64,000 nucleotides of DNA from positions 1,612,001-1,676,000 of the forward strand of contig BQFW01000003.1 of NCBI GenBank assembly GCA_020891255.1, written 5' to 3'. The position numbers and the translations under genes were made by a program. Below are positions 24,126 through 42,143 of this stretch, in pieces (position 1 is the stretch's first letter; each line of letters begins with the position of its first letter). Under the pieces are notes generated by a model that saw only the letters and a program-made list of their open reading frames with translations, did no database searches and was not told where the DNA came from. The stretch comes from Entomortierella parvispora E1425. Taxonomy: Eukaryota; Fungi; Mortierellomycota.

Positions 24126-24675
24126 GATGCGGTATGGTGGAGAGGGTAGAATGGATTTTATGGATGCAGTTGGTCTGTGCGTCCTCAATGTCCCAAACGC
24201 AGCCCTTTAAATATGTGAACACACGTGATGGGATGAGTCGGAATGACAACGGAAGCACACAGAGTGACACTCAAGGTCTTTTCTTTCAACCTCCAAGGGT
24301 TACAGACAAGGGGAACCTCCCAAAGCAACCACATCATGGATTGTTTCTTGCTTCCTGTAATCAAGCGCCACCAACTCAAGGGTGAGTCCGTCTGAGGGAA
24401 CGCCACCGATGATGACAACAGGCGTCAGCGACGCGACTTTGCTTTTATTTCTTGATCAAAAAAGAGAAGGGCTGGGTGCAGCAAACAAGGGACAGAAGAG
24501 ACGTGTTTTTTTTTGTGTTTATTCATTCAAGTTTTATACATTGGGTGAGCAGTTGCGTTCTTTGCAATTCGTTTTTTTTTGCTGGTGATTTCTTGTTCTT
24601 GTCTTTCACTTAAGGACCAGAATGAATGTCCTCAGGCAAGAAAGCCTCGAGACTGCATGAGAGATCCTCAACGAT

Positions 24676-27600
24676 CTACTCTTCATCGTCAGAGTACTTT
24701 CCACCCGAAGGAGGAGGGTACTGACGAGGCGTAGTAGACCCATTGGCCGGGCCTGTTCCACTGGGTCCTGCAGGGCTGTACGCAGGTCGTCCAGGCGTCG
24801 CTGCTCCAGAGTTGGCCGCTCCTCCATACCCCATGGGCGAGAATGTGGTCGAGCCAGAGTAGCTGGGAGAGTAGCTGGGACTGGCGGGCGAATACGAGGG
24901 CGAAGTAGGAGAGTACGAGGGGGACGTGGGCGAGTACGAAGGCGACGTAGGGGAGTATGATGGGGACGTAGGCGAGTAGCTCGGAGATGTGGGCGAGTAG
25001 GACGGCGACGTAGGCGAGTACGAGGGAGAAGTGGGAGAGTACGATGGCGACGTGGGCGAGTAGCTTGGGCTGGTAGGAGAGTAGCTTGGGCTCGTCGGCG
25101 AGTACGAGGGAGAAGTGGGCGAATAGCTGGGCGACGTAGGAGAGTAGCTCGGCGAGGTAGGCGAGTACGCAGGCGACGTCGCACCATAGCCATGGCTCGT
25201 GGGCGAGTAGCTCGGAGACGTTGGTGAATAGCTGGGAGACGTGGGCGAGTAACTGGGCGAGGTAGGTGAATACGACGGCGACGTGGGAGAGTACGATGGC
25301 GACGTAGGAGAGTAGGAGGGAGATGTGGGCGAGTACGATGGAGACGTTGGCGAGTAGCTGGGACTCGTAGGCGAATAGTTGGGAGATGTAGGCGAGTACG
25401 ATGGCGACGTAGGACTGTAGCCAGGACTGGTCGCGTACATGGGCGAGCTGGGAGAGTACCCAGGCGACGTTGCTCCAAAGGGACTCGATGGGTCCCAGGT
25501 GCCTGCTCCCATAGGTGAACTTGCTCCAGAGTTGCCCATAGGCGAGAACACTGCATCCATGGGTGATCCAGGGTGCGAAAAGTCCACATACTGGGGCGAA
25601 CGTCCATCGTACGGTGTCATCTGGGACGCCATGTTGTCGCCTCCCATACCCATTCCCATACCCATGCCCATCATGCCTGGTCGAGGACCCTCCACAACAG
25701 TGCTCAGCATCTTCTCGTCCAACATCAGGTCAAACTCGCCTGTACCCAAAGGTGCAAGCTGGCCCAACATGATGTTCTCGGCAACTCCGCGGCAGTCATC
25801 CAATTCACCAACAGCTGCTGCCTCCATCAGAATCTCCACAGTCTCCTCGAACGAACAGCGCATCAAAGCTCCAGTCTCGGCACGGTTAATACCATGGCGA
25901 GTAATGGCCATCAGATGGCCACGGTGAGTCATCACATCGCACAGAAGCGACAAGTGGCGGTAGTTGACATAGGAACCATCAAACTCAATAACTCCACGCA
26001 ACTCCTTCAACAGAGCCTGACGAGCTGCCTCAATACCGAGAACAGACATGACCTCTCCACAGTTGTTGGAGTACGTGCGGGTCGAGTCGACATCCTCTTC
26101 GCACATGACCGCCTTCAAGTTCGATCCACTGGTCTCGAGGTACCACTCCTTCTGCTTGTCGAATGTACCATCCGTGGTAATGTAGATCTTTTCCTTCTCC
26201 ACCATGTACACACGAGTAATGTTCTTGATACCACGGAGTCCAATCGAGCTCAACAAACTGCTCTCAATCTTCTTCAAGAAGACATCCTCCTCTTCCTGTA
26301 CCTCGGACTGCTTGTCCGCCGACTCTTCGCTGATAATACGGCAGCGGATAATCAGCTTTTCGGCGTTGTCGTCAGAGCAGATACACATCAAGTCGCGTTG
26401 GAAGTCATCCGAGATCTTGTTGGACACATCCGCCATAGTCAACTTCTTGTCAAGCATCATCTTGCGGTTGAGTTCAATACGAAGCAACCAGGGCGAGGTG
26501 CGGGACAGGTTCAGGTCATCGTCAGGCATAGCGTAGTACGCCGACACAAAGTCCTGATCCTCTGCAATGTTGGTGTTCTCGGGATCGGGATCATAGTGAA
26601 TCTCGGTCGAAGACGTCACCTTGCGCAAGTTGGTGTACTCCAGTGCGACCTGGACCTGCTTGGCACGCTCCATATTGCGAGCACAATCGGGTGTTAAGTA
26701 CACATTCAGCGATGGCGTCTTGATGTTGGTCGCAACGTTGATAATTTCCTTCAGACGAGGTACTCCAAGTGTAACGTTCTTGGAAGACACACCAGCATAA
26801 TGGAAAGTGTTCAACGTCATCTGCGTAGCGGGCTCTCCAATGGACTGGGCTGCAACAGTTCCCACCATCTCACCAGGGTTGACCATGGCATGTGCGAAGC
26901 GAGATCCGATCTCTCCGACAACCCAGTCAAACGCCTCTCTGGTCAAGTGGAACTCCTCAATGACTCTGCGAACAGCCAATGTCGAGCGGATCAACATGCG
27001 GAACAAAAGGGTGGCATTGTCCTGTGCCTCAACACTGATGCGATCCGTGCCTCGGACAACAATGAGCTGCTTTTCCAGGTTGCGGATACTCTCCAGAATA
27101 TGGCGGGGATCCAAGTCACTGGGTCGCTTGTGGTCAACGTGGAACATTTGCTTCGAGTTCCAGATGTAACGTCTGATGTTGGTGGGCATAGGCCATCCGT
27201 CTTCTCCCTCAGTAAAGATATAGTTGCGGAGCAGGTTACGGTCAGCCTCGAGCTGTTTGAACTCTTGCTCCAACAGTGTCTGCATATCAGGTTCTCCACG
27301 TTTGGCTGCCTCAACATCGGCCTCCTCAATGGCCTTGATCACACTGTAGTCCAATGTGCCTTGCTTAAAGCCCTTGGACTTGTCAGTCAGGTCAATGTGG
27401 TACTTTCGCTCGAATGCCTTGTTCGACATCTTGACAGTATCCAGCTTTTGCTTCTCAACGTGACAGGCGTCCATACCGTCTTCACCATAACAGAACTGAA
27501 TGACGTGACCAAGAGAGTTTCGGACAGTGCCATCGTACTTGACCATGACATCTTCCAATGCCTTGACCAGACGACGCTGAATATAACCAGTTTCGGCAGT

Positions 27601-41500: not shown

Positions 41501-41916
41501 GCCCAAGCTACTCTCCTACCAGCCCAAGCTACTCGCCCACGTCGCCGTCGTACTCTCCCACTTCTCCCTCGTACTCGCCTACGTCGCCGTCGTACTCGCC
41601 CACGTCTCCGAGCTACTCACCTACGTCCCCGTCGTACTCTCCTACGTCGCCTTCGTACTCGCCCACGTCCCCCTCGTACTCTCCTACTTCCCCCTCGTAC
41701 TCGCCCGCCAGTCCCAGCTACTCTCCCAGCTACTCTGGCTCGACCACGTTCTCGCCCATGGGGTATGGAGGAGCGGCCAACTCTGGAGCAGCGACGCCTG
41801 GACGACCTGCGTACAGCCCTGCAGGACCCAGTGGAACAGGCCCGGCCAATGGGTCTACTACGCCTCGTCAGTACCCTCCTCCTTCGGGTGGAAAGTACTC
41901 TGACGATGAAGAGTAG
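35570..41916 (+). CDS. RPB1: RNA polymerase II largest subunit, copy 2 (intact)
   Basis: Same motifs. Exons at about 35570-35656, 36050-36248, 36349-36419, 36520-36780, 36880-37265, 37381-38893 and 38969-41916. CTD with ~26 heptads. Confidence 0.98.
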
Positions 41917-42143
41917 ATCGTTGAGGATCTTGGATGCAGTCTCGAGGGCGTTCATTCCAATCCTTGAGTGACAGCAAATGAAAGGAAGGGCACTCTTTGT
42001 TTTATTGTAGCAAAATCTGAACAAACCACGAACCAAAAAAACGAATTGCAAAGAACGCAACCACACACCCAATGTATAAAACTTGAATGAATAAACACAA
42101 AAAAAAAATATGCTAAATTGTTTTCATGTTGTTGACAGATAAT

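Follow-up and report, generated by a model that had tools for sequence, protein, structure and literature searches.

A conserved head-to-head RPB1 palindrome with concerted evolution in Entomortierella parvispora and other Mortierellaceae

The genome segment of Entomortierella parvispora E1425 analyzed here is a stretch of 64,000 nucleotides (GenBank assembly GCA_020891255.1, contig BQFW01000003.1, positions 1,612,001 to 1,676,000 of the forward strand), which we call the window and in whose coordinates all positions are given. It contains two full-length copies of RPB1, the gene for the largest subunit of RNA polymerase II (Pol II), arranged head to head as the arms of a palindrome. The arms are nearly identical from the start codons to the region encoding the C-terminal domain (CTD), the same layout is found in other genera of the Mortierellaceae, and in a gene tree the two copies group by species. 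These results suggest that the RPB1 palindrome is very probably ancient and has been homogenized by recurrent gene conversion from arm to arm.

Results

Two RPB1 genes form the arms of a palindrome

The model of copy B was built from stop-free segments and GT-AG sites, and the coordinates of copy A were transferred from it (Table 1). A spliced RNA contig, described below, matched introns 1-5 of the model exactly. Rpb1 domains 1-7 (PF04997, PF00623, PF04983, PF05000, PF04998, PF04992 and PF04990) were detected in exons 2, 5, 6 and 7 above the curated cut-offs, and the copy B product has the catalytic metal-binding loop motif of RPB1 at residue 491. YSPTSPS heptads start at residue 1562 (22 exact, about 27 when counted loosely; 79.7 bits with PF05001). 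Such a C-terminal heptad array sets Pol II apart from Pol I and Pol III. Exon-level protein searches reached short contigs only, and a query alignment of the window exons with a full-length homolog reached full-length RPB1 of the Mortierellaceae. The best full-length matches of the window protein were annotated RPB1 proteins of this family, and a protein tree placed it inside the family with support of 100/100, nearest to Linnemannia and Mortierella alpina. An exact database look-up of the product of the exon-6 open reading frame (ORF) returned no record. Judged from domain content and phylogeny, both genes are RPB1 (RPB1/RPO21), encoding the catalytic largest subunit of Pol II.

The arms were delimited by an inverted-repeat search, joined by BLAST and then compared base by base in a global alignment. 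The inverted-repeat search returned two pairs of about 100% identity (24645-29136 / 37456-41947 and 29134-31026 / 35567-37459), and the joined arms, 24506-31026 and 35567-42107, were 98.96% identical over 6543 columns. In the global alignment the inner edge of the identity was ACC ATG at 31026 / 35567, that is, 3 nt before the start codon (ATG-3). Over the 5.57 kb from this edge to the start of the CTD, introns included, the arms differ by one extra T and by a single substitution, G at 30800 in copy A versus A at 35793 in copy B, in intron 1. The next difference is met only at 25459 / 41133, where the CTD part begins; from there to the stop codon 16 substitutions were counted (about 2% divergence). 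Past the stop codon, three clustered mismatches are followed by multi-base indels, and the 3' untranslated region (3'UTR) is about 12% diverged down to 24506 / 42107. The differences are tract-like: one near-identical tract of 5.57 kb is followed by a final stretch of about 1 kb that holds 30 mismatches and 10 gaps.

A preliminary description of this sequence had listed two full-length RPB1 genes of 6348 and 6347 bp in inverted, divergent orientation, near-identity ending at ACCATG and 3'UTRs with multi-base indels, and the alignments bear out each of these points. The single intron substitution it reported is present, but both of its coordinates (35792 / 30801) are off by one. The single T indel is also present (T5 at 29134-29138, T4 at 37456-37459), its position in a coding exon having been overlooked, and the "~15 silent changes" in the CTD are indeed all synonymous but number 16.

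At the outer end, arm A, arm B and a contig of the sister species (L004:3895-3918) lose homology at one point, just after AATAAACACAAAAAAAAA (24506-24530 / 42085-42107), which is probably the polyadenylation region. The last 108 bases or so of the sister contig align to neither flank of the window. The end of the arms after AATAAA and a run of A raised the possibility of a retrocopy, and this origin was rejected because both copies keep all their introns. A search for Rfam families and tRNAs between 24000 and 42600 found none.

Table 1. Features of the RPB1 palindrome and its surroundings in the window.
Feature	Position	Strand	Basis or remark
Arm A: RPB1 copy A and about 170 nt of homologous 3'UTR	24506-31026	-	BLAST and global alignment versus arm B
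RPB1 copy A, ATG to stop, frameshifted as assembled	24676-31023	-	mapped from copy B
Copy A exons	31023-30937, 30543-30345, 30244-30174, 30073-29813, 29714-29328, 29212-27699, 27623-24676	-	
T5 run in exon 6 of copy A (T4 at 37456-37459 in copy B)	29134-29138	-	sequence read directly
Ancestral upstream region of copy A, 5'UTR about 446 nt	31027-31591	-	RNA contig; 74% identity to sister contig L005:319-870
Insertion of about 3.7 kb splitting the ancestral spacer	31592-35262	.	35263 and 31591 are contiguous in L005
Ancestral upstream region of copy B	35263-35566	+	77-78% identity to L005:3-300, reverse orientation; no RNA contig over region
Arm B	35567-42107	+	BLAST and global alignment versus arm A; DNA contig of depth 145.8 (run X1) begins exactly at 35567
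RPB1 copy B, intact, 7 exons, 1821 amino acids	35570-41916	+	gene model, RNA contig and Pfam
Copy B exons	35570-35656, 36050-36248, 36349-36419, 36520-36780, 36879-37265, 37381-38893, 38969-41916	+	
CTD-coding segment with arm differences	41133-41916 (mirror 24676-25459)	+	16 substitutions, all synonymous
Diverged homologous 3'UTR	41917-42107 (mirror 24506-24675)	+	three-way alignment with sister contig L004; ends after AATAAACACAAAAAAAAA
POL2, DNA polymerase epsilon catalytic subunit, synteny anchor (matched part)	49950-54908	+	tblastx versus flanks of L085, L086 and L088
Metallophosphatase gene	61720-63022, approximate	-	

Paralogs group by species and diverge towards the outer end

A DNA tree of exons 6-7 grouped the two paralogs by species at 100/100 for the window, Mortierella sp. 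GBAus27b and Linnemannia, with between-species distances of about 0.1-0.3 substitutions per site. The clustering of copies within species despite shared synteny, which had been proposed as a check on the palindrome, is the signature of concerted evolution. Comparison with the 3' contig of the sister species, L004, showed that over 41133-41916 copies A and B share 62 differences from L004 and differ from each other at 16 positions. In the 3'UTR, A and B differ from each other (23 differences and many indels) as often as they jointly differ from L004 (20). The inner 5.57 kb are therefore fully homogenized, the CTD was homogenized recently, and for the 3'UTR the last homogenization dates back to roughly when the species split.

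Arm differences in GBAus27b were also clustered, with a variance-to-mean ratio of 3.8; two stretches, of 1116 and 945 bp, were free of differences (P=0.0014 for the longest tract). The mosaic is unlike that of the window: the CTD is identical, and the clusters of differences lie elsewhere. Such differing mosaics are what stochastic conversion tracts would produce.

The upstream regions are unrelated and are separated by an insertion

We compared the upstream regions of the two copies with shuffled controls. The best local score was 15, against a shuffle mean of 14.3, and 121 of 300 shuffles reached that score; no homology between the A and B upstream regions above shuffled controls was seen in the window, GBAus27b, Linnemannia or the sister species. 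The 13-mer CCCCTTGTCCTCG occurs in both upstream regions of the window (31190-31202, minus strand; 35507-35519, plus strand), in just one of the two regions in the sister species, and in none of the other genera checked. The preliminary description had regarded the promoters as different apart from this 13-bp remnant. The upstream regions are unrelated, as it said, and the 13-mer is in both, but we rejected its status as a remnant or shared element, since the upstream alignment is at chance level and the 13-mer is one-sided in the sister species.

In the window the arms are separated by 4.5 kb, which consists of an ancestral spacer of about 0.87 kb and a 3.7-kb insertion. The two parts were told apart with L005, a metagenome contig of the sister species with about 86% DNA identity, in which positions 319-870 align to 31591-31014 and positions 3-300 align in reverse to 35550-35263. 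The two upstream halves are adjacent in L005, which puts the ancestral spacer at about 870 bp, a size as in other genera, and both halves are old. The inserted segment 31592-35262, missing from L005, is specific to this lineage. L005 begins about 15 nt from the expected start of arm B, as assemblers do at repeat edges.

The insertion holds two pairs of diverged inverted segments, 31977-32186 versus 33981-34192 (77.6%) and 32222-32296 versus 33723-33796 (74.7%). ORFs of the insertion and spacer had no match in Pfam, the ends of the insertion, which are approximate, showed neither a clean target-site duplication nor terminal repeats, and no further copy of it was found elsewhere in the window. 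Two short repeats lie in the spacer, a GT/GC microsatellite at 35330-35362, about 210-240 nt upstream of the copy B ATG, and a repeat at 33024-33071 that coincides with the break point of short-read contigs. We do not claim a flip of the spacer between Linnemannia and the window, for which there was one weak match (63% identity, E about 1e-3).

Transcription of copy A and the extra T in exon 6

Assembler contigs of three public runs (X1, a DNA run, X2 and X3) were placed on positions 31501-37500. Run X2, listed as 'DNA?', is RNA: a contig of 6042 nt skips all five introns of the placed stretch, with GT..AG borders. This contig has 446 bases beyond 35567, and the 30 nt at the junction match 31027-31056, upstream of copy A, exactly and uniquely. 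From this we infer that transcription starts close to 31472, with TATAAAAA (31522-31529) about 50 nt further upstream. No X2 contig was found over 35301-35500, upstream of copy B, although a short 5'UTR there would have been trimmed by the assembler as a tip of the graph. A contig of low depth (4.7) from the same run, 35917-36054, covers the 3' end of intron 1 and the acceptor junction, which suggests some unspliced pre-mRNA.

The extra T of copy A causes a +1 frameshift at position 1085 of the coding sequence (codon 362), inside a conserved motif, with the first stop at residue 375. Most probably it is an unpolished homopolymer error of the assembly, because the indel site reads T4 both in the double-depth DNA contig and in the RNA contig that bears the 5'UTR of copy A, because the copy A lineage has synonymous changes only, and because this kind of error is typically met in long exact repeats, to which short reads cannot be assigned. 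The pair in the Linnemannia metagenome-assembled genome (MAG) has a like pattern. Its arms (L088:10747-14622) differ by nine single-base indels and four substitutions, one copy is tagged 'LOW QUALITY PROTEIN', and the indels look like residual long-read error within the repeat, of the same kind as the extra T.

If T5 were real, copy A would be a very young pseudogene, and full-length RPB1 would come from copy B only in this strain. The assembly, with its T5 in a conserved coding motif and the early stop, reads this way. Contigs drop minor variants, so T4 contigs cannot show that T5 is absent, and the RNA contig could be a chimera of A and B. We nonetheless consider a pseudogene unlikely. T4 was found in a transcript with the 5'UTR of copy A itself, no contig with a B-type 5'UTR was seen, the double-depth DNA contig agrees, and all ten derived CTD changes on the copy A lineage are synonymous. 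A one-base homopolymer indel within a long exact repeat is, moreover, in the blind spot of short-read polishing, as the Linnemannia MAG illustrates. The earlier proposal of one Pol II protein under two promoters is thus borne out in part: RNA from one run extends into the upstream region of copy A and no contig into that of copy B, and the two proteins are identical only if the extra T is an error.

Both copies bear the mark of purifying selection

All 16 exonic substitutions between copies A and B, in codons 1561-1766, are synonymous. Random changes in the CTD segment are synonymous at 27.5%, giving a probability of about 1e-9 for 16 of 16. Since 15 of the 16 fall within 17-mers that are unique in the CTD, they are point substitutions, not heptad exchanges; micro-conversion between heptads, which would make an all-synonymous outcome trivial, was rejected for these 15 sites on the same ground. 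When the 16 sites were polarized with L004, ten were derived in A, five in B, and one was unresolved. The two gene models of GBAus27b share the same seven-exon structure, and the exonic differences between them are likewise synonymous (20 of 20). At the level of sequence, these data show both copies under purifying selection.

We then considered whether only one copy is functional and the other is a passenger, overwritten time and again by conversion from the functional one. RNA evidence exists for the upstream region of copy A only, and a dead copy, too, would go on looking intact under frequent one-way conversion. However, the changes that arose after conversion are synonymous on both lineages (10/10 derived in A and 5/5 in B, besides the 20/20 of GBAus27b), both gene models of GBAus27b are complete, and the 300 bp upstream of copy B are kept in the sister species about as well as the region upstream of copy A. 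A passenger copy is therefore quite improbable, and copy B is probably functional in this species too.

The pair is shared with other genera of the Mortierellaceae

In Mortierella sp. GBAus27b (GCA_025330735.1), two head-to-head RPB1 genes encode the same protein of 1832 amino acids. The arms are 98.7% identical, the boundary is at ATG-7, the unique spacer is 805 bp, and POL2 is adjacent. A MAG of Linnemannia elongata (GCA_033807475.1) also has a head-to-head RPB1 pair, with arms of 99.8% identity, the boundary at ATG-10, a spacer of 838 bp, and a metallophosphatase gene and POL2 nearby. The layout that was to be looked for in related genomes was therefore found in both, with the boundary 3-10 nt before the ATG and a spacer of about 0.8-0.87 kb across the three, the ancestral spacer being counted for the window. 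In both genomes, as in the window, POL2 and a metallophosphatase gene lie in the neighborhood of the pair. The POL2 (+) and metallophosphatase (-) block of the window is inverted relative to the Linnemannia MAG, in which the order is the RPB1 pair, metallophosphatase (+) and POL2 (-).

Other assemblies gave indirect signs of the pair. Two M. alpina assemblies and a Logan assembly (SRR15183925) have RPB1 alone on contigs of 6.6-6.7 kb whose ends lie 0-8 nt ahead of the ATG and about 255-275 nt past the stop codon, which we read, indirectly, as the footprint of a collapsed two-copy arm. Several other short-read assemblies of Mortierellaceae have RPB1 alone on contigs of 6.5-7.3 kb. In both Benniella sp. 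and Lobosporangium transversale, proteins of identical sequence carry accessions that are adjacent or nearly so within a single assembly. Actinomortierella wolfii (two assemblies) and A. ambigua have a single RPB1 on long contigs in another neighborhood (SH3 / sideroflexin). In an outgroup-rooted protein tree, Actinomortierella was sister (100/99) to a clade that holds all the pair-bearing taxa, which fall on both of its sub-branches.

These relatives make it very improbable that the duplication is recent and lineage-specific and has been repeated independently across the Mortierellaceae, with no long-term gene conversion. Within-species identities of 98.7-100% are those of a young duplicate, Actinomortierella has one copy, and spacer homology across genera is weak, all of which would fit repeated recent events. 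Each event, however, must recreate the orientation, the breakpoint 3-10 nt before the ATG, the unique spacer of about 0.8-0.87 kb and the neighborhood of POL2, and both halves of the spacer are kept in the sister species. A single recent event also cannot give a 3'UTR in which A and B have diverged to the level of the sister species next to a gene body that is identical. The shared layout, the two old spacer halves, the grouping of paralogs by species and the divergence rising outwards all favor an old inverted duplication with a homogenized gene body, as the preliminary description had supposed.

Short-read contigs support the duplication

The X1 contigs on the spacer had depths of 81.3, 74.5 and 83.6, and the arm contig had a depth of 145.8, about 1.8 times higher; contig depth here is a mean only, and the outer arm junctions fall outside the placed stretch. 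The arm contig begins exactly at 35567. One single-depth contig, 34430-35596, extends 30 nt (k-1) into arm B, and another runs through the spacer from 33023 down to 31501, its last 30 nt matching the arm head, which by length places the junction at 31026. Arm heads joined to both ends of one spacer, together with the 1.8-fold depth, led us to reject a misassembly, for which half depth over the arms or a lack of spanning sequence had been expected. An artefact, either a single RPB1 erroneously duplicated or two haplotypes wrongly joined at their heads, is scarcely credible. Near-identical inverted repeats of 6.5 kb are a classic product of long-read assembly error, and the two differences within the first 5.5 kb might be noise. 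However, the k-mer depth comes from an independent graph of short reads, in which two distinct single-depth sequences, the two spacer ends, attach to the arm head. The copies also differ in CTD and 3'UTR and have unique flanks, and independent assemblies of other genera have the same layout.

Run X3, labelled as the same organism, has two haplotypes of exon 4 (36585-36708; depths 91 and 106) that differ at 4 of 124 positions. These may be less-homogenized paralogs or two alleles or nuclei, paralogs and alleles not being separable here. The contig total of X3 is 71.5 Mb, compared with 41.7 Mb for X1.

Discussion

We propose that an inverted head-to-head duplication of RPB1 occurred in the ancestor of most sampled Mortierellaceae. 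Its inner breakpoint would have been a few bases upstream of the ATG, leaving a unique spacer of about 0.85 kb with two unrelated upstream regions. Recurrent non-allelic homologous recombination between the inverted arms would then homogenize exons and introns while the species diverged by about 20%. The edge of identity at the ATG is sharp presumably because conversion cannot enter the non-homologous spacer, and at the outer end conversion may be rarer, so that the 3'UTR and then the CTD would escape. That the edge lies at the ATG in all lineages may reflect either the original breakpoint or an erosion halted by purifying selection, two possibilities that the data cannot separate. Most probably one and the same protein is made from the two copies, to the benefit of dosage or robustness, under different upstream regions, which would leave scope for separate regulation; in this species the 3.7-kb insertion has pushed these regions apart.

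A more far-reaching version can be offered only tentatively, as we think it rather less likely than otherwise. It holds that the palindrome has been kept across most of the family, that erosion of the conversion boundary was halted at the start codon by purifying selection, and that one identical protein is made from two unrelated promoters, each free to evolve and be regulated on its own. Inter-arm conversion would then serve as repair or back-up of an essential gene in largely clonal, multinucleate fungi, and a transposon-derived insertion would uncouple the promoters.

Several observations weigh against an ancient palindrome homogenized by conversion. Gene conversion is seen only by its footprint, no event having been observed directly. 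Support from Benniella, Lobosporangium and M. alpina is indirect, being based on accession adjacency and contig ends, and a 16-kb contig of Modicella has no second RPB1 within 1.26 kb upstream. With Actinomortierella single-copy, the age of the duplication depends on a rooted tree of a single gene. The frameshift, taken literally, makes copy A a pseudogene, and with no RNA contig upstream of copy B, two active promoters are unproven in this species. Finally, the short-read support consists of assembler contigs with mean depth and minor variants dropped, and their continuity is broken at the short repeat 33024-33071.

An ancient, conversion-homogenized RPB1 palindrome has a close parallel in primates, in which ampliconic palindromes of the Y and X chromosomes are homogenized by arm-to-arm gene conversion. 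The two systems share inverted arms, a unique spacer, arm identity far above species divergence, sharp edges and intact genes. Unlike the primate palindromes, the RPB1 arms are 6.5 kb long and hold one essential housekeeping gene, not testis-specific families; the inner boundary is at the start codon, the spacer would act as a divergent promoter region, and the host is a mostly haploid fungal family.

Duplicated housekeeping genes provide a second comparison. Yeast TEF1 and TEF2 evolve in concert, and fungal duplicates of this kind are mostly dispersed, with conversion often limited to coding sequence or cDNA-like tracts. Concerted evolution of duplicated ribosomal protein genes in fungi is reported in a published study (bioRxiv 10.1101/751792 / PMC6993855). 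In the RPB1 pair as in the fungal housekeeping duplicates, dosage-sensitive core genes are kept near-identical via conversion, with both copies under purifying selection; the RPB1 pair differs in forming a tight head-to-head palindrome in which introns are homogenized too.

Histone H3-H4 and H2A-H2B pairs are divergently transcribed from a short shared intergenic promoter, and the ancestral RPB1 pair resembles them in its head-to-head genes, here about 0.8 kb apart. It differs from them in that the genes are copies of one gene, the spacer halves are unrelated, and a 3.7-kb insertion lies between them in this species. More than one RPB1 gene per genome, as in the window, is found in Trypanosoma brucei, which has two genes for the largest subunit of Pol II, and in the mucoralean Chlamydoabsidia padenii, for which two distinct RPB1 proteins are annotated on different large contigs, presumably from an unrelated duplication. 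To our knowledge these are dispersed or whole-genome duplicates, and none is a conserved palindrome with concerted evolution. The mechanism is known from gene-converting palindromes and from housekeeping duplicates of fungi that evolve in concert; the RPB1 instance seems not to have been described, no account of the Mortierellaceae duplication having been found in the literature searched.

The essential and dosage-sensitive RPB1 gene is as a rule handled as single-copy and is among the standard markers by which species of Mortierellaceae are described (for example PMC10277274, PMC12195542 and PMC12661329); the full text of PMC10277274 mentions neither copies nor paralogs. Short-read assemblies collapse RPB1 onto an isolated contig of about 6.6 kb, and RPB1 alone on a contig that starts at the ATG can serve as a practical signature of a collapsed palindrome. 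Species with an arm difference of about 1%, such as GBAus27b, should give a mixed Sanger signal, and residual assembly errors in the arms lead to false 'pseudogenes' or 'low quality proteins'.

The RPB1 pair offers a compact and tractable case for how conversion and selection fix the edges of homogenized tracts. M. alpina is transformable, and knock-outs and promoter swaps would then be feasible. The pair is also a case for asking why a core transcription gene stays two-copy in these fungi, and whether two unrelated promoters partition its expression.

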